Sequence record: NC_021531.1 | Direction: 5' to 3' (one strand) | DNA: 64,000 nucleotides | Shown here: positions 14,657 through 54,097 of the stretch, piece by piece | Layout of the letters: the number at the start of each line of letters is the position of its first letter | Position numbering within the stretch: position 1 is the stretch's first letter | Translations under genes and position numbers: made by a program | Notes under the pieces: generated by a model | Told to the model about the DNA's origin: nothing | Database searches by the model: none | What the model saw: only the letters and a program-made list of their open reading frames with translations

Positions 14657-16438
14657 ATGGTAGAATTCTACGACGAAAACAAAAACTCCAACACTTCTAA
14701 AGACTCTAACGCTGCTACTGGCAACGTTCAGGGCTTTTCTGTTGGTACCGCTGCCGAAATGAACATGGCCTTTGAGTGGAGCTCCGTCAACTCTCAGGCT
14801 GGTAAGTTCGTCGAGCTGATTAAAGAAGCGGCGAAAGAGAACAAGTATCTGGCCAACTTCCAGGTCGGTACTGTTGATGCGGTAACCGGTGAATTCGGTT
14901 CTGCGGCTTACGTCGCTGGTGAACTGCGTGGCATCCCGCTGTTCGGTATCGTGTTCTTCGAGAAGGGCCTGTCCCTGCGTCTGGTGGTAAACAACAATCA
15001 GGAAGATTACTACTCTATCGCTTCCCTGATTAACAAAGACGTTATCGCCACTGTTGCGAAAACGCTGAAAACCACCCACAGCCTGTCTCAGGACCCGCGC
15101 TTCATTTCCATCAACACCATCCCGGATCTGGATATCGCCCTGACCCGTGAGCGTGCTCTGTCCATCATGGGCCAGATGATGACCAGCATCTTCGGTCGTG
15201 CTTCTGGCTATCTGGGCAAACTGGTCGTCACCAAAAACGACAAGTTCATCGCACAGGTTGGCAGTATCGGTGAAGGCGCAGTGCTGGACGTAAACGGTCA
15301 CGCACAGCGTGCTGACTTCGGTATCAAACTGTCTCACGTGCCGATGCAGCAGAACACTGCACCGACTCTGATGTCCGGTACCAACGCTCAGCAGTATCCG
15401 AACTGCGCCGCAGCTGGTTACGCTAACCTGCGTTACACCGGTATCGTGAAGAACGCTGACGGTTCCATGAAAGACCGCCGTCAGATTTCTCCTGAGCTGG
15501 TTGTGAGCCTGATGGACTCCTCTACCCTGACTGCGAACGCACCGTTCGAACGTCAGCTTCTGATGCTGGGTGTTGCGGCTAAAACTGCAGCGCTGGGCGG
15601 CTGGATGGAATTCATCAAGAACTCTCTGGACGGTAAGACTCGTAAAATCTCTGCGCTGGCGCAGAACTGCAACTGGGGTGCAGACGTGTCTAACACCGAC
15701 TGGAAAGCGATGGACAAATCTGCAGAAGCGGCTGAACGCTTCCTGCGTGAGTTCTGCTACGAAACCGCTGGTCTGGTAGTTGAGCACCGTGCTGGTAACG
15801 GTATCGGTGGTCTGATTGGTCTGCTGTCCGAAGTGGCACAGAACAAACCTCAGGCGCTGGAAACCCTGCTGGCTCTGCTGGACAACATGTTCCCGGCTGT
15901 AGACAATCTGAAGTTCTCCGATGGTCTGCGTCAGGCATTCGGCGGTAACGTTACACTGAACGCGTCTCACATCGTGTCTGGTGTTGTTCCGACCGTAGCC
16001 GGTGTTTACCGTGGTTCTAACGGCCTGCGTTCATACTCCGATATGGACCTGCTGCGCACCACTACCCACCTGGGTGACGACCGTGCCGAAGTGCTGAAAT
16101 ACTTCCGTGCTCAGTCCTACAAACACCGTAACATGTCTCCGAAACAGCAGCGTATCTATCTGGCGCAGCTGGCTAACAGCATGTTCTCTGGCAACGATCC
16201 GATTCCGACCGGTGAAGCTGTTCAGATTTCCATCAACCCCACTTTCGCTAAGTTCCTGTACGAAGCGATTGATGCACACGGCCTGTTGCAGCTGACTGGC
16301 GTTAACGCTGTGTCTGTTGCGGATTCCGTACCGTTCTACAACAACACTGGCGAACTGTTCGTAATGTCTGGTGTTGGTGGCGTGTCTACCAACAGCGCGT
16401 TCGACTTCGCTCAGCAGTCTGGCTATTTCAGCATGTAA
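14657..16438 (+). CDS. chmA: chimallin, phage nuclear shell protein (phiKZ gp54-like)
   Basis: ~593 aa from ATG 14657 (AGGA SD); lies between DNA polymerase and RNAP beta' gene; motifs DVNGHAQRADF, AAGYANLRY, SDMDLL and TGEAVQISINP resemble known chimallins; strongly biased high-expression codons. Confidence 0.9.
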   Translation: MVEFYDENKNSNTSKDSNAATGNVQGFSVGTAAEMNMAFEWSSVNSQAGKFVELIKEAAKENKYLANFQVGTVDAVTGEFGSAAYVAGELRGIPLFGIVFFEKGLSLRLVVNNNQEDYYSIASLINKDVIATVAKTLKTTHSLSQDPRFISINTIPDLDIALTRERALSIMGQMMTSIFGRASGYLGKLVVTKNDKFIAQVGSIGEGAVLDVNGHAQRADFGIKLSHVPMQQNTAPTLMSGTNAQQYPNCAAAGYANLRYTGIVKNADGSMKDRRQISPELVVSLMDSSTLTANAPFERQLLMLGVAAKTAALGGWMEFIKNSLDGKTRKISALAQNCNWGADVSNTDWKAMDKSAEAAERFLREFCYETAGLVVEHRAGNGIGGLIGLLSEVAQNKPQALETLLALLDNMFPAVDNLKFSDGLRQAFGGNVTLNASHIVSGVVPTVAGVYRGSNGLRSYSDMDLLRTTTHLGDDRAEVLKYFRAQSYKHRNMSPKQQRIYLAQLANSMFSGNDPIPTGEAVQISINPTFAKFLYEAIDAHGLLQLTGVNAVSVADSVPFYNNTGELFVMSGVGGVSTNSAFDFAQQSGYFSM

Positions 16439-21784: not shown

Positions 21785-22480
21785 ATGGCGTTCAACCATA
21801 AGTTTCTTAAAGACAAATCTATTCTGCCGAAAACCAAACCTGACGCACGTGGCCAGCAAAAATCCATGTCCATTGAGCCGAACATGTTCAATGGTGAGTG
21901 TGAGGGGCTGACCTTCAAATACTTCTTCGGGAAGGGCGAAGGTCTGTACCCGGCAATGAAACTGGGCACCCTGCGCGCAATCTGCGACGCGCTGGAAGAT
22001 GCCCTGCGTAACAAAGAGCAGAGCAAGCTCGAGTTCGAAATCACCAACAGTCAGAACAAACCGGCGACCATTATTACCGTGGGTCGTGGCGAAGATCTGA
22101 TTCCGTTCCTCGGTCTGTCCGGTGATGTTAACGGCCAGAAAAAGGCACAGAAGTTCATGTGGTATGCTGACAAAGGCGTGCGCTTGCTGCGTAACGGTCA
22201 GCCGGTTCCGGATCTGGAAGTGCATGAGCGTATGACCCGTACGTTCGTAAAAGAGTTCGACCTGTTTGTTCGTGCACTGGAAGACGTGTTCAATCCGCGT
22301 GAATGGAACAACAACGGTGGCGGCGGTCAAGCTAGCCGTGGTTCTTATCAGGGTGGTGGTCAGCGTCAAGGTGGTGGCTCTTATCAGGGAGGCGGCTCTT
22401 ATCAAGGCGGTGGTCAGTCTGGCGGTCAAGGCGGCGGTTCTATGGCTGCGGCGACTAACGAATACGACGAAATGTTCTAA
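21785..22480 (+). CDS. chmC: ChmC-like nucleic-acid-binding protein with G/Q/S/Y-rich C-terminal tail (phiKZ gp67-like)
   Basis: Directly upstream of the sigma-like subunit and PicA; 231 aa with disordered tail. Confidence 0.7.
   Translation: MAFNHKFLKDKSILPKTKPDARGQQKSMSIEPNMFNGECEGLTFKYFFGKGEGLYPAMKLGTLRAICDALEDALRNKEQSKLEFEITNSQNKPATIITVGRGEDLIPFLGLSGDVNGQKKAQKFMWYADKGVRLLRNGQPVPDLEVHERMTRTFVKEFDLFVRALEDVFNPREWNNNGGGGQASRGSYQGGGQRQGGGSYQGGGSYQGGGQSGGQGGGSMAAATNEYDEMF
22345..22437 (+). repeat. in-frame degenerate repeat encoding GSYQGGG units
   Basis: GGYTCTTATCARGGN repeated three times. Confidence 0.7.
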
Positions 22481-22573: not shown

Positions 22574-24214
22574 ATGAACATTGAGAAAATTCGCGAAAGC
22601 GTGGTGATTAGTCGTAACGGCGAAACCATTACTTTTAATAACGTGCCGCACATCAACCGTAAAAAGAACACGGTCAAGATTCGCATGGAAGATGATGGGG
22701 ATTTCCTGTCACGTGACCAACTGCTGTTCCTCGAACTGAATCGTCTCTGGGGTACGTTCTCCGAGAAAGAACTCGACGAAGTTTGGGAGATTTACAAGAA
22801 TGTGCAACTGCTGGTTACTGAACCGGACGATGTACGTTTTGAAGTGTTGCCGGACATGCTGCGTCGTTTGGTTGAGCTGCATTACGTCGACCGTTACATT
22901 GCACTTTACCCGCAAGACAAAGTGTGGATTCCGAAGAAGCTCGAAAACAACTTCGACAACATTTCTCCGAACTACACGGAAGCCATGACGTATCTGGTCT
23001 CTGACTATTATAACCTCATGACTTTCACTCTGGCATTGAAACCACTGATTCCGGTCTTCGCGGCATTCGGTGCGTATCCACCTGTGAAGATGAACTCACA
23101 GTCTGCTCGTCGTAAAATCGTGACCTTGACGAACGATTGCTTCGAAATTCTGCTGACGTCCAAACTGGGCAGTCATCCAGCGATTCAAAAGCTGCGCGAC
23201 TCTTTACCACACACCATCGTGAAAATTCAGAAGGAAGCCGGTTCCCAGAACTCGAATGCTCCGTCACTGACACTGATTGCGGTCGTGGAAGGTTATGGCA
23301 TCGACGCGCTGGAAGAGTACATCACAGCATTTACTGTTGTGAACATTCTGGCACTGCAACCGGTAGGTGCGGATTTCAAAGAAGGTGTGATGGATGAAAA
23401 CTCCATCGTAAGCCGCATCTTCTATGGCATTCGTCCGGAAGTGTTGAATGGGTTTGCTGATAAAATGTCAGCACACCACGTCACCGAGAAACCGCATGCG
23501 TCCACCATGAAACTCAATGGCGAGCGCGGCAAGACCTCCGTGATTGATACCGTGAATGCACGCTCTACAGCACCGATTAAAGAATCGGAACGTACGGCGT
23601 TTTACTTTACGGAGTATCGTCGAGCGTTGAAACGTATCGAAGCAGACATCGCACCAGCCCGATGCAAACAGCACATCGATGGGATTATCGAACATCATCC
23701 ACGTCCGTTCTCTGAACTGCACGAGTGGTTGGTGTCGGTGGTGTTACATCGTCATGCGCACCGCGGTACGTATAAAGATGTCGACCAGAAAGCCTTCATG
23801 CATGGCATGGGCATTGCGCAGGCAATCTGGGCAAGCTATGGAATGTTTTCGGCCGCAGCACTGCTAAGCTGTTCTGCGTTACCGGGTCGTGACGGTTTGG
23901 AATATCCGTTCCTGCCAATCGAATCCGATATCAAAGAAAAGTCGGAAATATATTATCCTCAGGCATACCGTGCGCATAAAGGTACGGAAACCATCAGTCC
24001 TTTACGTGAGTCAGTGATGATTCTGATTCGCGATTACATTAACCCGTACAGCTTCCATCTGAAAACCTCACCTGAGGTCGCAGAGATTCTGGGCGTGCAA
24101 CCGGAAGTGAAAGGTTACATCCCGGGTAAGAATCTCCAAATGGAGTTGTCCGAAATGCTACTGATTCAGGCACGACAGAAACATCGTGAACTGCATCCGT
24201 TGGCCGCCGAATAA
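22574..24214 (+). CDS. non-virion RNA polymerase sigma-like subunit (phiKZ gp68-like)
   Basis: ~546 aa, GAGGAG SD; conserved position between ChmC and PicA. Confidence 0.7.
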   Translation: MNIEKIRESVVISRNGETITFNNVPHINRKKNTVKIRMEDDGDFLSRDQLLFLELNRLWGTFSEKELDEVWEIYKNVQLLVTEPDDVRFEVLPDMLRRLVELHYVDRYIALYPQDKVWIPKKLENNFDNISPNYTEAMTYLVSDYYNLMTFTLALKPLIPVFAAFGAYPPVKMNSQSARRKIVTLTNDCFEILLTSKLGSHPAIQKLRDSLPHTIVKIQKEAGSQNSNAPSLTLIAVVEGYGIDALEEYITAFTVVNILALQPVGADFKEGVMDENSIVSRIFYGIRPEVLNGFADKMSAHHVTEKPHASTMKLNGERGKTSVIDTVNARSTAPIKESERTAFYFTEYRRALKRIEADIAPARCKQHIDGIIEHHPRPFSELHEWLVSVVLHRHAHRGTYKDVDQKAFMHGMGIAQAIWASYGMFSAAALLSCSALPGRDGLEYPFLPIESDIKEKSEIYYPQAYRAHKGTETISPLRESVMILIRDYINPYSFHLKTSPEVAEILGVQPEVKGYIPGKNLQMELSEMLLIQARQKHRELHPLAAE

Positions 24215-24252: not shown

Positions 24253-25971
24253 ATGAAACTGCTGCAACTGCAAATGTACCCGGTCTACGAAATCCCTGAG
24301 CAGATTCGTCGCCGAATTGCATTTAACGCAGGTACCGAAGACCTGACCCATCTGAGCGATGTGATTGTTCAGAATGGTGCGGGCGCGACCAGCGCGTTTG
24401 ATTATGGCGAAGCAATGGGTAAGATTGTAGGCTTTGACCCGACCCCGGGCAGCTTCGAGAAACCGATTGTTGATATTTCCGAACAGAACAATACTGTCAC
24501 CCCTTTCCGCTTCGAGCAGCGTAGCCGCATTTATAACTTCGTGGCGGTAGTGGTGGTAAACCCAATCAACGAAACTCGCTCGCAGGAGATTCGTTACATC
24601 CTGACCGGTTACACGTCAGAAGCCGACCCGACGTTGGCGAGCCTGTTGCCTGACGATATGGTGTTGTACATCAACGACATCTATGGCGTGCGTCTGAGCT
24701 ATAAGTACGACGCCGTCGGTAACCGCTATGTTGACCCGAACTCGTTCCAGATGGTAGACAACTATGTACTGTCGAACACACTGGTAACGCAACAGGGTAC
24801 CGAACTGACGCTGGACCCGATTGCGCTGACTAAGGCAGCCAAAACGGTTTCCAATCTGGACGTGAATCCGCTGGCAGGTGAGGAGCTTTCCTTTAGCGTC
24901 AACTCCGATAGCGTACTTGGCCCGTCACTGCAATCTGAAGCGCAACTGCTTACAGCGCAGCTGACTCGTCCGGAGTCGTTCATCGGTGCGATGTCCACGG
25001 GCTTCCTTAACTCATTACTGAATGAGCAGGAGTCTAACTCCCTGACGGGCATCAATGCGTTCTTTGATAACGGCACCATGTCACTGGAAGGTGAGATGCG
25101 TCGTCTGGGCGTAGTGAAGTCGTATAAGAACCACAACTTCGCTAACGCCATGCGTACTGCATTGTCACGTAACAACTTCGTGACCGATGCTTATCGCCAG
25201 TCTCAGGATGCTAAGTTCCGTCTGGGTGACCTGCGTGCTGTGCTGTTCAACCCGGCTGACCTCAACCGTATGCTGCAAGAATCGCTGAGCACCGCTCTGC
25301 GTAACATGCACATGGGTATTGATAAAACCGATAGCTGGACTAGCACCAACGGCTTTGCTACCGAAGCGTCATTGGTAGCGTATGACGTTGGCATGCGCAT
25401 GGGTCAGGTGATGGCTAAGAACCTGATTAATACCGTACGTGTCGTCTTTGACAACCGTATGGCGAACTTCGACACGCAGCCACAGCTGTCGGTGGTGCCG
25501 GGTTCGGCGGAGTCAATTAGTGAAGGGGGTATCCCAGCGCTGATGGCTCGCAACTTCATGCGTGAAATGATGCAGACCTTCATTGCGGCAACTCGTCACA
25601 ATGCGGTTCGTGTCAAAATGGTGGTGATTGCCCGTCTGGGTCAGGTAATCCGTATTGAGATTACGCCGGACGGTGAACCAACCACCGAGTTCTACACCTT
25701 CGCGTCGTTCATGTCTTCCCGTATGCATATCGGCCTGACCTACGACAATACTTACAACAACACCGTTGCGAAAAATACCAGCACGTTGTTCAATACAATC
25801 CAACACGGCTTTGATGAGTATACTCGTCGCGATTCCTCGAACGCGGTGATGGTCTCATTGTCGAATGTTGCTCCGTCTAACGGGTTTACGATTCCGGATT
25901 CACCGGTCTCCCAGCCCGCGTCTGGCGGGTTCTCGTTCGGCAGCGATGACGTTACTGGATTCAAACTCTAA
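24253..25971 (+). CDS. picA: PicA/Imp1 phage nuclear protein-import factor (phiKZ gp69-like)
   Basis: 572 aa, GAGGAG SD; conserved position after the sigma-like subunit. Confidence 0.7.
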   Translation: MKLLQLQMYPVYEIPEQIRRRIAFNAGTEDLTHLSDVIVQNGAGATSAFDYGEAMGKIVGFDPTPGSFEKPIVDISEQNNTVTPFRFEQRSRIYNFVAVVVVNPINETRSQEIRYILTGYTSEADPTLASLLPDDMVLYINDIYGVRLSYKYDAVGNRYVDPNSFQMVDNYVLSNTLVTQQGTELTLDPIALTKAAKTVSNLDVNPLAGEELSFSVNSDSVLGPSLQSEAQLLTAQLTRPESFIGAMSTGFLNSLLNEQESNSLTGINAFFDNGTMSLEGEMRRLGVVKSYKNHNFANAMRTALSRNNFVTDAYRQSQDAKFRLGDLRAVLFNPADLNRMLQESLSTALRNMHMGIDKTDSWTSTNGFATEASLVAYDVGMRMGQVMAKNLINTVRVVFDNRMANFDTQPQLSVVPGSAESISEGGIPALMARNFMREMMQTFIAATRHNAVRVKMVVIARLGQVIRIEITPDGEPTTEFYTFASFMSSRMHIGLTYDNTYNNTVAKNTSTLFNTIQHGFDEYTRRDSSNAVMVSLSNVAPSNGFTIPDSPVSQPASGGFSFGSDDVTGFKL

Positions 25972-25983
25972 AAGGAAACCACG

Positions 25984-27399
25984 ATGAGTACCAAGCTGAA
26001 CATTATTGACTTCTACCGCGCCCAGTTGGATTCACTGGGCTTTGGGGATAAAGATGCGTTCCTCTTCCACAAAGAAGATGGTGAGCTGACTGACCCGGTG
26101 AAGTTCAAGTACGCAGGTGAGGAGCGCCAGATGGTGCTCCCTACTTACCAGATGATTAAAGCTGGTTTGCGTGATGAGTTGGGTAACGATTGCCATGCGT
26201 ATCACCCACTGTGTGAATCGGTCATGACGGGTGAGTCCGGCACCATCCGCTTCCTTAAGCAGGCGATTAAGAATCAGCTGTACGTGAAAGGCATGAGCTT
26301 TATCACGTTCCTGATTAAGGCGCTGGCCGATGGGAAGTCTTCACGTTCCGCAACCTTTAAGAAGTTTGTGGCGGAGATGACCAAAGGCATCAAAGATCCG
26401 AAAATCGATGATAAGTTACTGCGTAGCTGGATGAACGTGGCGACGTATATCAAAGATAAGATGGATAAGAAGCAGCGCATTATGCTGAGCATCCAGCCTG
26501 ACCAGAAAATCGACGGTGCGAAATATCTGCGGGCGGCGAACTACAAGCATGCGTTCAGTGAAGAGCAGGATGACGGTACAGCAACGTACTTCGGTGTCCG
26601 TCTGGAACGTAAGCAGGACAAAGTGATTATTCACAACCTGCTCACCACCGTGTTCGGTTGGTATCCGGAAGAGATGGGGTCAAACGACCAACGTGCCTAT
26701 TACGGTTCGTTGATTCGTGGCTGGGCGGAATTCGTGTTGAAGTTTAATCAACATGCAAAAGGTCTGAAAGATATCGTTCCAGACTACGAGCTGTTGAATG
26801 ACACGTGGCTGCCTGAGCTGGACAACATGCGTGAGTACGACGGGAAAATTCAAACCCTGCCGTACAATACCGGTAGTCGTGATGCCAATGTCGAAACCAC
26901 GCAGAAAGATTTCCGTGTGGGTGGACAACGTAGTTACGAAGAGCCGGTTGCGCAGACTGCGACGGAAATCCGCAAAACGGAGAACGGGTTAATTGACCCT
27001 CTGTCTCTGTTGTCTCCGAAAACGGCACCGAACTCCGGTAACGTGTTTGTGAACGGTACCCGTCAGGTTGACCTGTCACAATACGCACCGATTGAACAGA
27101 AGCTGATTCGCGAAGGCCGTACTCAGGCACAGCCGTCGAAAATCTCTTCTATTCCGTTGTCACAAGCACTGGGTGGTGGTCATACGCCGCGTGCGGGAAG
27201 CGCTGCTGATTTCTTCGGCGGTAACACTGGTAACGTGTTCACCAACACAACCAGTAACAGCAACCCGTTCACCAGTACCACTTCCAGCAATCCGTTTGCA
27301 GCTGCGTCGAATAACAATCCGTTCACCGGGGGTGGTAACAATAACCCATTCGGTGGTGGCGGTAGTAACGACAACAGTTTGTTTAGCGGTATGCTGTAA
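25984..27399 (+). CDS. conserved chimallivirus protein (phiKZ gp70-like) with NPF-repeat tail
   Basis: 471 aa, AAGGA SD; synteny; low-complexity C-terminus. Confidence 0.7.
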   Translation: MSTKLNIIDFYRAQLDSLGFGDKDAFLFHKEDGELTDPVKFKYAGEERQMVLPTYQMIKAGLRDELGNDCHAYHPLCESVMTGESGTIRFLKQAIKNQLYVKGMSFITFLIKALADGKSSRSATFKKFVAEMTKGIKDPKIDDKLLRSWMNVATYIKDKMDKKQRIMLSIQPDQKIDGAKYLRAANYKHAFSEEQDDGTATYFGVRLERKQDKVIIHNLLTTVFGWYPEEMGSNDQRAYYGSLIRGWAEFVLKFNQHAKGLKDIVPDYELLNDTWLPELDNMREYDGKIQTLPYNTGSRDANVETTQKDFRVGGQRSYEEPVAQTATEIRKTENGLIDPLSLLSPKTAPNSGNVFVNGTRQVDLSQYAPIEQKLIREGRTQAQPSKISSIPLSQALGGGHTPRAGSAADFFGGNTGNVFTNTTSNSNPFTSTTSSNPFAAASNNNPFTGGGNNNPFGGGGSNDNSLFSGML

Positions 27400-27400
27400 G

Positions 27401-27437
27401 CAAAAAATAAATAAGGGGTTAGCACCCCTTATTTTTT
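27401..27437. terminator. bidirectional intrinsic terminator
   Basis: AAATAAGGGGT-TAGC-ACCCCTTATTT flanked by A and T tracts between convergent genes. Confidence 0.85.
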
Positions 27438-27760
27438 TAAACGACCGCGGAGTCCAAGATGCTGGCTACCACACCGATGTCCGGAATCATCAATGTCTGG
27501 ATATCAGGGGTAAACTCCATCGGGCTTCGCAGATTGTTTAAAAGCATGATTGGGAAGACCAGTTCGCTTGGGATACCGGCCAGTCTGCAATACGCATACA
27601 GGCTGTGCATCTCCGGATACGAGTAGCGTGGGTCTACCGCTACTGCTTTCTTTGTGTCCGGATGGTTCCGCAAGTAGTCGAGATGGTCAATGATGAGTTG
27701 GCGCTCTATTGTGCTAAGGGCAGGAATGGCCGACTCGTAAGTTACAAAGCTATCAAGCAC
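27437..27760 (-). CDS. small protein with LysM-like (T4 gp53 / tail-X type) pattern
   Basis: GTG start with AAGGAGG SD; IMLLNNLRSPMEF..IQTLMIPD pattern. Confidence 0.55.
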   Translation of the reverse strand: MLDSFVTYESAIPALSTIERQLIIDHLDYLRNHPDTKKAVAVDPRYSYPEMHSLYAYCRLAGIPSELVFPIMLLNNLRSPMEFTPDIQTLMIPDIGVVASILDSAVV

Positions 27761-52801: not shown

Positions 52802-54097
52802 ATGAACTTTATGCAAAAACGGGCAGCTCGTGAGTCTATCGAAGACGGCGCTACCGACGCAGGTATCAGCAACATCTCTACCGGCGAAGACAACCTGGAC
52901 GTCCAACTGACCGAAGTTGCTCCGCTGGATCAACAGATGGATCAGCTGGCGGGCGATGCTGAAGTCCTGGCTGCCGACACCGAGCGTACCGAAGCTGCGA
53001 TCGACAACGCTGATGAAGCGCTGGCCGCTGGCGAAGAACTGCCAGAAGAAGAACTGGCACCGGCAATCGTTGCTGGTGAGAGCATCCGTCGCCGCTGGCG
53101 TCTGGAGACCCCGCAGGTTGCTCGTGAAAGCTTCCGCCGTGGTCGTGGCCTGACTCGTTCTGCCTGCGAAGGCTGGAAAGAGAACCTGAAAAAACTGTGG
53201 CAGGCGTTCATCGAAATGGTGCGCACTGTTATCCGTAAAGCGAAAGAGCTGAAGCTGAAATATTTCAACGTCGGCAAATCTGCGGTCAAGCGTGCGAAAG
53301 CGTACGAAGAGCGCATGAAAAAGCTGGGCACCAAGAAAGAGAAAGACGAAATCTCTGGTAGCTTCGTAGACAAACTGTCTATCGAAGGCAAATTCGATCC
53401 GGAAGCGTCTGCCTCTATCGCGAAAGAAGCGACCCAGGGTAAAGCCAAAGGCGCGATCAGCAAACTGGCTGCTCAGGCTGACAAAGCTGCTGCATTCGTT
53501 GTTTCTGCTTCTGAAGGCGGCGAAACTTCCTTCTCCGATCCAGCTGGCGGTAAAGTTGAGCTGTTCGGTACTGCCGGTTCTAAACTGCGCGTGCTGCCTC
53601 AGTTCGATGACGCTACTGGCGTCGATGCGATGCAGACCATCATGGCTCTGCCGGGTAACGCCTATATCCAGTGCGCTACCAAAAAGCTCAGCACCAAAGA
53701 CGGTGAATCTACTCTGACCGTTGTTGCGTTCACCACTACTGGTGATGCGAACGATGAGAAGAACGTCCCGACTCCGGACGCGGGCAAACTGCGTGCCGCT
53801 ATCTCCAGCCTGAAAGCTGTCGGCGAAGGCTTCGAAAAAGTCCTGAAAGACTTCGATGCGTATGACCGTGAGCTGGACAAACTGGAAAAAGCTGCTGATA
53901 AAGCATCCAAAGCGTTCGATAAAGCGACCGACGAAGGTGACCGCACTCTGCTGTCTAACTCTCGTACCATCGCTGATCAGGCGGTTCGTAACTATCAGGC
54001 TCTGAACCGTGGCGTACAGCACGTTGGTCGTACTGTTATCGCTGGTCTGTCCGGTTACATCGGTGCCGGCATCGGCGCGTACGGCAACAGCAAGTAA
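52802..54097 (+). CDS. abundant inner-head/ejection protein, phiKZ gp93 family (SPN3US gp53-like)
   Basis: Acidic propeptide; multiple AxE/S sites (ARES, AGES, ARES); paralog of next gene. Confidence 0.82.
   Translation: MNFMQKRAARESIEDGATDAGISNISTGEDNLDVQLTEVAPLDQQMDQLAGDAEVLAADTERTEAAIDNADEALAAGEELPEEELAPAIVAGESIRRRWRLETPQVARESFRRGRGLTRSACEGWKENLKKLWQAFIEMVRTVIRKAKELKLKYFNVGKSAVKRAKAYEERMKKLGTKKEKDEISGSFVDKLSIEGKFDPEASASIAKEATQGKAKGAISKLAAQADKAAAFVVSASEGGETSFSDPAGGKVELFGTAGSKLRVLPQFDDATGVDAMQTIMALPGNAYIQCATKKLSTKDGESTLTVVAFTTTGDANDEKNVPTPDAGKLRAAISSLKAVGEGFEKVLKDFDAYDRELDKLEKAADKASKAFDKATDEGDRTLLSNSRTIADQAVRNYQALNRGVQHVGRTVIAGLSGYIGAGIGAYGNSK

Follow-up and report, generated by a model that had tools for sequence, protein, structure and literature searches.

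The stretch of DNA analysed here, called the window, is the first 64 kb of the genome of Cronobacter phage CR5 (NC_021531.1, genus Derbicusvirus), which it matches at 100% identity. Our subject is CR5_033, a plus-strand gene at 25984..27399 that follows directly after the gene for the import factor PicA and encodes a protein of 471 residues with a phenylalanine-bearing, low-complexity C-terminal tail. The protein belongs to family phrog_3520 (E=1.7e-132), which PhiPA3 gp64 and Goslar gp173 match as well, and its BLASTP match to PhiPA3 gp64 has E=4e-16. PhiKZ gp70, 201phi2-1 gp126 and RAY gp245 are further members of what is referred to below as the gp70 family. In the GenBank/RefSeq record, CR5_033 starts at 26131 and is 422 residues long. 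An upstream ATG is found at 25984, 12 nt past the PicA stop codon; this ATG is the real start, since homologs align from residue 3-5 and invariant columns fall within residues 1-49.

CR5_033 consists of a folded N-terminal domain (25984..26853, residues 1-290), a disordered linker (26854..27207, residues 291-408) and the low-complexity tail (27208..27396, residues 409-471), with the stop codon at 27397-27399. An AlphaFold2 model built from 42 sequences gives the domain a predicted local distance difference test score (pLDDT) of about 90. The model shows essentially no confident structure from residue 292 to 471, where pLDDT is below 50 except for about 60 at residues 361-380; this makes the tail the low-complexity end of some 180 disordered residues. 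The domain is specific to this phage family. Foldseek found no fold match for it in the PDB (best E=0.32), and its sole matches in BFVD are uncharacterised jumbo-phage proteins; a phmmer search of PDB sequences returned no match for CR5_033, PicA or the shell protein ChmA (chimallin). The net charge of the domain is near zero, +1 in CR5 and a median of -1 in the family. Residues H74, P75 and E78 (window 26194-26220, residues 71-78) are invariant in the alignment of close relatives, with the equivalent columns invariant or nearly so in two distant alignments; H74-P75...E78 is a candidate functional site of the domain. A zinc site made up of C70/H71/H74/C77 was considered and rejected, because its Cys columns are neither invariant nor nearly so in the two distant alignments. 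Inside the disordered region, an S391-L392 motif (window 27130-27180, residues 383-398) is nearly invariant among the 42 relatives, and a helix is weakly predicted at residues 369-376 (pLDDT about 60). This part of the linker may be a separate, putative binding element.

The tail contains 14 Asn, 11 Gly, 9 Ser, 8 Phe, 8 Thr and 4 Pro, with G/S/N/T making up 67% of its residues. Charged residues amount to 3%, compared with 27% in the remainder of the protein. The Phe residues, taken here as stickers, occur in the contexts DFFGG, NVF, four copies of NPF, and SLFSG, and the protein ends in SLFSGML. Counted from their first residues (427, 436, 445 and 454), the NPF motifs repeat with a strict period of 9 residues or 27 nt (codons 27262-27270, 27289-27297, 27316-27324 and 27343-27351). 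The original prediction, made by reading the DNA, had described four regularly spaced NPF motifs plus FFGG, NVF and LFSG in a nearly uncharged N/S/T/G tail, and translation reproduces that description exactly. Composition-preserving shuffles of the tail yielded four NPF motifs in 0 of 200,000 trials and three in 7 of 200,000. There is one Phe per 8 residues, with successive gaps of 1, 8, 10, 9, 9, 9 and 11; for the hydrophobic stickers of the tail, the coefficient of variation (CV) of the spacing is 0.63 against 0.79 for shuffled sequences, a difference that is not significant for this one tail by itself (21% of shuffles reach it). Tandem Repeats Finder detected no tandem repeat in the DNA that encodes the tail, so the periodicity is kept at the level of protein.

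Six sequences make up the Derbicus/CR5 clade, at 69-98% identity. All six keep the DFFG, the NxF, the four NPF motifs and the terminal FSG without change, and with them all eight Phe positions; their spacers differ in both sequence and length, indels included. Fixed Phe motifs among drifting spacers indicate selection on the stickers. It is a real, disordered and non-random tail, and selection acts on it.

When 1.84 billion cluster representatives were searched with a profile, 972 relatives came up at E<=1e-3. Sequences of 188 were analysed, and 183 of the 188 have a near-complete domain. In all 183, the domain is followed by a C-terminal extension, 169 residues long in the median. Charged residues make up a median of 7% of the last 70 residues and 26% of the domain. 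The dominant hydrophobic sticker is Tyr in 64 representatives, Leu in 50, Phe in 36, Met in 27 and Trp in 6. About 65-75% of the representatives have an uncharged tail in which Y, F, M, L or W residues are placed at even intervals, and about 25% have instead tails of Arg/Asp repeats that are 45-79% charged. Among the 136 uncharged tails, 90% space their stickers more evenly than shuffled sequences do (median CV 0.63 versus 0.79). A hydrophobic residue occurs among the last three positions in 91%. The NPF motif itself is local: all four copies are kept throughout the CR5 clade, but in the family as a whole just 7 of the 183 representatives have at least three NPF motifs. The kind of tail is thus loosely conserved, and the long, low-complexity, predicted disordered extension is the universal feature.

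Two observations concern the annotation of family members. In Pseudomonas phage Viktualia (PV037725.1, 162091-163482), the annotated coding sequence is on the minus strand, while tblastn and synteny place the gp70-family ortholog on the plus strand; the strand is probably mis-annotated. Two database proteins, from Salmonella phages SPFM14 and SPFM12, were excluded from the sample because their family matches are broken into up to 15 short, out-of-order stretches, as though the sequence had been scrambled; they are likely artefacts of assembly or annotation.

CR5_033 and the gp64/gp70 orthologs have in common a homologous folded domain, a position right after PicA, and a layout in which a long disordered extension comes after the domain. 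They differ in the flavour of the tail, which is NPF/Phe in N/S/T/G in CR5, rich in Met, Pro and Gln in PhiPA3 and PhiKZ, rich in Tyr, Phe, Gln and Pro in 201phi2-1, rich in Gln, Met and Pro in RAY, and weakly low-complexity in Goslar. As a GFP fusion, PhiPA3 gp64 is found at the nuclear shell; RecA-miniTurboID labels it, and in a pull-down it came with ChmB, as did PicA (PMC10643120). It is expressed early and is listed as an "uncharacterized nuclear-shell-associated protein" (PMC10643120; PMC11077065). In the literature searched, we found no functional study of the gp64/gp70/gp173 family, no description of its tail in work on the phage nucleus, and no mention of it in two recent reviews or in papers on essentiality and knock-down. 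CR5_033 is a new member of this known yet uncharacterised family.

Three other genes in the window bear on the tail. CR5_032 (24253..25971, plus strand) is the ortholog of PicA/Imp1; it belongs to phrog_3141, shared with PhiPA3 gp63 and Goslar gp174, and its last 40 or so residues form a Phe-containing tail (25849-25968) with a short ...GGFSFGSDDVTGFKL end. CR5_030 (21785..22480, plus strand) is the ortholog of ChmC/Imp6, in phrog_3284 with PhiPA3 gp61 and Goslar gp176, and has a G/Q/Y-rich tail with an acidic-hydrophobic tip. CR5_023 (14657..16438, plus strand), located between the genes for DNA polymerase and an RNA polymerase (RNAP) beta subunit, is the ChmA candidate through synteny and a match to phrog_4795, "nuclear shell protein", at E=1e-8. 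The names ChmA, ChmC and PicA had been assigned in the original prediction, and PHROG families and synteny bear them out; the gene right after PicA is therefore the gp70/gp64 ortholog. The same prediction had all four genes clustered. They do belong to one conserved block, but ChmA is 9.5 kb upstream and not adjacent. It also had all four proteins ending in disordered tails with spaced aromatic residues. This is right only in part. The ChmA tail has F and Y, but consists of the known lattice-docking segments, while ChmC ends in SYQGGG repeats and the PicA end is short. When one uniform criterion of low complexity and low charge was applied, only ChmC and CR5_033 qualified in the window.

We compared the C-terminal tails of these proteins across 29 genomes, non-redundant at 80% identity, with 13 available for comparisons that involve ChmA; the permutation P-values below count lineages, not independent events, as the genomes are related. 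The tails of PicA and of the gp70-family protein from the same genome share 106 3-mers, compared with 46.3+-8.9 when partners are permuted (z=6.7, with 0 of 50,000 permutations reaching the observed value). Their last five residues are alike as well (P=0.001), and their charge is correlated (rho=0.69). To a lesser degree, ChmA tails also follow those of the gp70 family, in 3-mers (z=3.0, P=0.004), in the last five residues (P=0.008) and in charge (rho=0.97, n=9). ChmC served as the control. Its 3-mer comparisons with the others are null (P=0.96, 0.51 and 0.70), and neither its last five residues nor its charge gives a significant result. ChmC comes from the same operon and its tail, too, is of low complexity, and its failure to co-vary argues against a lineage-wide compositional bias.

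At least eight flavours are matched between PicA and gp70-family tails: NPFG, SFG, NSLLD, GGLGGG, ...LGLL, ...DLF, F[ST]F and R/D. Both tails have NPFG repeats in one locus (L008), SFG repeats in four (L047, L049, L052 and L053), and NSLLD in four others (L041, L042, L044 and L046). GGLGGG repeats occur in both in SPN3US, phiEaH2 and Asesino. PicA ends in ...LGLL in PhiPA3 and 201phi2-1, where the gp70-family protein ends in ...GLGLL and ...GMGLI, respectively, and both proteins of JM-2012 end in ...DLF. In pVa-21, Xoo-sp14 and three metagenomic contigs, both tails are rich in Arg, Asp and Ser. In two lineages (L045 and L050), PicA, ChmA and the gp70-family protein all have nearly identical four terminal residues. 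The search for related loci returned 18 when run with an alignment of close relatives and nothing when run with four single representatives. Gene conversion between the 3' ends of the PicA and gp70-family genes was examined as a source of the likeness and rejected: nothing beyond codon-repeat matches of 7-49 nt was found, and the absence of long DNA identity indicates that there has been no recent gene conversion. The concerted tail chemistry of gp70-family proteins, PicA and ChmA appears not to have been described before.

Two further observations belong with these tails. ChmC tails (window 22307-22477 and the ChmC genes of L002-L053) have a G/N/Q/Y-rich stretch followed by an acidic-hydrophobic tip, [FY]D[DE]xx, in nearly all lineages. 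The tip reads ...EYDEMF in CR5 and is kept even in lineages whose other tails are rich in Arg and Asp; it has the look of a short, conserved binding motif of its own, a putative assignment. Two phages of the Arg/Asp class, pVa-21 (L030) and Xoo-sp14 (L032), have a ChmA that is Arg-rich in its C-terminal tail (23-30% K+R) and, in pVa-21, also at its N-terminus. In these phages, it therefore seems, the lattice-linking tails have exchanged hydrophobic for charged chemistry.

A third protein with the NPF flavour emerged from a scan that covered 214 of the 224 kb of CR5. CR5_074, at 72665-74209 of the CR5 record (L054:8665-10209) and so outside the window, is the only other real open reading frame (ORF) in the part scanned with an uncharged low-complexity segment and repeated NPF. 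It belongs to phrog_8185, adjoins a polymerase gene, and is 45 kb from CR5_033. Its internal linker contains NPFT, three copies of NPFL, and NIFT. Close relatives of CR5_074 retain the four NPF motifs, and two distant relatives have (S/N/G)(I/L/V)F instead. One 111-kb contig, SRR25400273_6969, encodes both a distant CR5_074 relative and a gp70-family protein with an (S/G)(L/M)F-type tail; x[ILM]F motifs occur in both proteins, with the Phe columns invariant and the preceding residues not. The two protein searches made with CR5_074 returned close relatives only.

These results suggest a reading in which the tail serves, in the PicA/ChmA neighbourhood of the shell, as a multivalent module for docking or cohesion that is specific to the lineage, a proposal that we regard as evenly balanced between right and wrong. 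The tail would act as an array of stickers and spacers, with evenly placed Phe residues, four of them as NPF, set in uncharged, fast-drifting spacers of N/S/T/G. Its contacts would be multivalent and of low affinity, each made by a short, weak, lineage-specific motif, and together they would hold the folded domain at the ChmA lattice, near PicA. The tails of CR5_033, PicA and, in this clade, CR5_074 might offer the same short motif to one common site, on ChmA or on another component of the shell. Alternatively, tails that are alike might cohere with each other. Physical binding, the identity of the partner and any role in import are what we infer from the sequences. A precedent for docking by such segments exists in ChmA, whose flexible CTS1 and CTS2 tails dock onto adjacent protomers and are required for self-assembly (PMC9365700). 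Like the tail of CR5_033, these are flexible C-terminal segments with hydrophobic anchors at the shell, and their chemistry tracks that of the gp70-family tail. They differ in being short, in becoming partly ordered when bound, and in holding the lattice together; the CR5_033 tail is a repeated array. Mimicry in CR5 itself is weak, with ChmA ending in ...GYFSM and CR5_033 in ...LFSGML, and we do not claim direct mimicry of CTS2. The original prediction had offered two interpretations, an FG-like selective phase or a multivalent docking system. The second fits the co-variation with PicA, ChmA and CR5_074, the shell-localised PhiPA3 ortholog, and the adjacency to PicA; the first fares worse, as discussed below.

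Several results weigh against docking or cohesion at the shell. Within CR5 itself, the PicA and CR5_033 tails have zero 3-mers in common and are alike in Phe/Gly character only. In seven lineages, RAY, Goslar, Proteus phage 10, SA002 and Eowyn among them, PicA lacks a low-complexity tail, and no match is seen. The relatedness of the genomes means that the permutation P-values overstate the number of independent events, and the ChmA sample is small (n=13). The third side of the comparison, ChmA with PicA, is not significant in 3-mers (P=0.10) or in the last five residues (P=0.15), with a charge correlation of rho=0.80 (n=9). PhiKZ gp70 is listed as a nuclear protein, and when it was co-expressed with Imp1/PicA in E. 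coli the two did not co-purify (10.1101/2024.03.27.586873). The negative pull-down fits weak or indirect contacts, and also fits no contact. Goslar gp173 is a nuclear-localising tag in a 2026 preprint, and both of these orthologs are described as nuclear rather than as located at the shell.

The nuclear location of PhiKZ gp70 and Goslar gp173 is one point in favour of another explanation, in which the tail is a generic condensate-promoting low-complexity domain that works inside the nucleus with non-virion RNA polymerase (nvRNAP) or with mRNA, its likeness to PicA and ChmA reflecting a shared physicochemical environment and not a shared ligand. The gene does sit among genes for nvRNAP subunits. 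Tails that are aromatic or rich in Q, N and G, and tails of R/D repeats, are both typical of RNA-associated low-complexity domains, and the gp70 family has both kinds. Much as prion-like or FUS-like domains do, gp70-family tails combine low charge, polar spacers and stickers more even than chance; they differ from such domains in that the identity of the sticker switches by lineage (F, Y, M, L, W or R/D), in step with that of partner proteins. The known case is ChmC, which resembles CR5_033 in being shell-associated, in being encoded in the same gene block, and in having a folded domain followed by an uncharged G/N-rich tail with aromatic residues. The C-terminal N/G-rich disordered region of ChmC condenses with RNA (PMC11077065). 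The ChmC folded domain binds RNA. For the CR5_033 domain, Foldseek against the PDB gave neither a recognisable relative by fold nor a nucleic-acid-binding fold, and the net charge of this domain is near zero. ChmC further differs in having a tail of one flavour, and one tip, in all lineages. Thus the one tail known to form condensates does not co-vary with the tail of the gp70 family. The latter has exact motifs (NSLLD, SFGSFG) and extreme C-terminal residues in common with PicA, and the likeness is therefore more specific than one of composition alone. We consider the condensate explanation possible but unlikely.

A selective phase of the kind made by phenylalanine-glycine (FG) nucleoporins was the other interpretation in the original prediction. 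Many copies of the tail, together with the PicA tail, would fill an opening in the ChmA lattice with a cohesive hydrophobic meshwork that admits only proteins with the right surface. Cohesive FG domains of the GLFG type have, as does CR5_033, uncharged spacers rich in N/S/T/G with regular Phe; the density of one Phe per 8 residues and the even spacing of stickers agree with it; SFG, LFG and MFG repeats are found in some orthologs, among them true FG-type repeats such as SFGG, SMFG and NPFG. The PicA tail is of the same flavour, an ortholog is found at the shell, and the route of proteins across the shell is an open matter. Against this, FG nucleoporin domains run to hundreds of residues, while the CR5 tail has just 63, with 8 stickers that are mostly NPF and with 2 of the 8 Phe residues in FG dipeptides. 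No Pfam FG-repeat nucleoporin model matched CR5_033 or its seven FG-richest relatives, even at E<=10. Cryo-electron tomography has shown no protein-sized pore, according to a 2025 review, and no pore scaffold or transport receptor is known; nor was a complex of gp70 with Imp1 detected in PhiKZ. The chemistry is not conserved among orthologs, with Phe dominant in 36 of 183 and NPF restricted to one clade, and the Arg/Asp-repeat tails of about 25% of orthologs, at 45-79% charged, cannot make an FG-like hydrophobic phase. An FG phase in the strict sense is accordingly improbable. There is also a broader proposal. The tails of PicA, gp70-family proteins and ChmA, together with linkers like that of CR5_074, might constitute a lineage-specific "address code" of short cohesive motifs that builds a selective zone of entry or tethering in the shell, a convergent analogue, made on a protein lattice, of the FG-repeat barrier of nuclear pores, with a chemistry (Phe, Tyr, Met, Leu, Trp or Arg/Asp) that arose again and again in concert. 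We rate this as speculative and rather doubtful.

The diversity of tail chemistry across the family, together with rapid spacer change and indels, might also be read as neutral drift in a passive flexible spacer. Likeness to PicA would then come from a lineage-wide bias in mutation or repeat expansion, or from occasional recombination between adjacent 3' ends, and weak, short DNA matches between the PicA and gp70-family 3' ends do occur in the repeat-rich classes. But the eight Phe positions are fixed over 69-98% identity, spacing is non-random in 90% of tails, and no long DNA identity was found between the two 3' ends. The ChmC tail, from the same operon, ignores the flavour of its lineage, and CR5_074, 45 kb off, shares it. 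A passive spacer is very unlikely on these grounds. That the four NPF motifs form a ligand array in eukaryotic style for a partner resembling an EH domain is barely credible, as NPF is confined to one clade (at least three copies in 7 of 183), sister lineages swap the NP for other residues and keep the Phe, and a Pfam scan of eight neighbouring proteins found no EH domain among them.

In overall architecture alone, CR5_033 resembles bacterial single-stranded DNA-binding protein (SSB), whose design is a fold, then a disordered linker, then a short terminal tip. This is analogy and not membership, as Foldseek detected no oligonucleotide-binding (OB) fold and no homology was found. The lineage-by-lineage change of the tail in step with those of PicA and ChmA speaks for a code of docking or cohesion shared at the shell, putatively displayed by the NPF tail, rather than for a proven nucleoporin-like barrier.

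The rest of the locus is conserved along with the gene. CR5_031 (22574..24214, plus strand), between ChmC and PicA, is the ortholog of the nvRNAP subunit PhiKZ gp68, with a match to the solved structure of PHIKZ068 in the PDB at E=7.6e-7. CR5_034 (27437..27760, minus strand; phrog_3455) is a small conserved gene that comes next after the gp70-family gene in nearly all genomes examined. It converges on CR5_033, and a hairpin at 27409..27434, between the two genes, forms a bidirectional intrinsic terminator. The Pfam scan of the eight neighbouring proteins assigned no family except RNAP. The gene order is SbcD, gp66, ChmC, gp68, PicA, the gp70-family gene, the small reverse gene, nvRNAP beta/beta' and a helicase. 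It is kept in every full-length locus examined, with the gp70-family gene always after PicA, across PhiKZ, PhiPA3, 201phi2-1, Goslar, RAY, SPN3US, Wellington, Huxley, Asesino, pVa-21, Eowyn, Proteus phage 10, SA002, FLC9, Xoo-sp14, JM-2012 and long metagenomic contigs. In one metagenomic relative (L007:14042-16645), the helicase position after nvRNAP beta' is taken by a product of 867 residues that contains a homing-endonuclease domain of the LAGLIDADG type; the probable cause is an intein or an inserted homing endonuclease. Elsewhere in the window, a Ser/Ala-rich low-complexity ORF at 52945-53472 on the minus strand is antisense to an ORF at 52802-54097 on the plus strand and is probably not a gene. 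Outside the window, in a sparsely annotated region near CR5_157 (CR5 record 136236-137047, minus strand; L055), there are two ORFs with Cys/Ser/Gly repeats of CSG-type periodicity.

The main open question on the phage nucleus is by what route folded proteins get through the closed ChmA lattice. PicA/Imp1, located at the shell, is established as essential and selective, but no pore, signal or mechanism is known. The gp70 family is conserved, PicA-adjacent and seen at the shell, yet has been left uncharacterised. That three proteins of the shell neighbourhood shift their tail chemistry together, and that ChmC does not, is a testable clue to contacts at the shell. It also supplies a way to predict members of the system in any chimallivirus from sequence alone, as proteins that carry the local tail flavour, of which CR5_074 would be an example. 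The concerted tails are a testable lead on how the import site of the phage nucleus may be organised.

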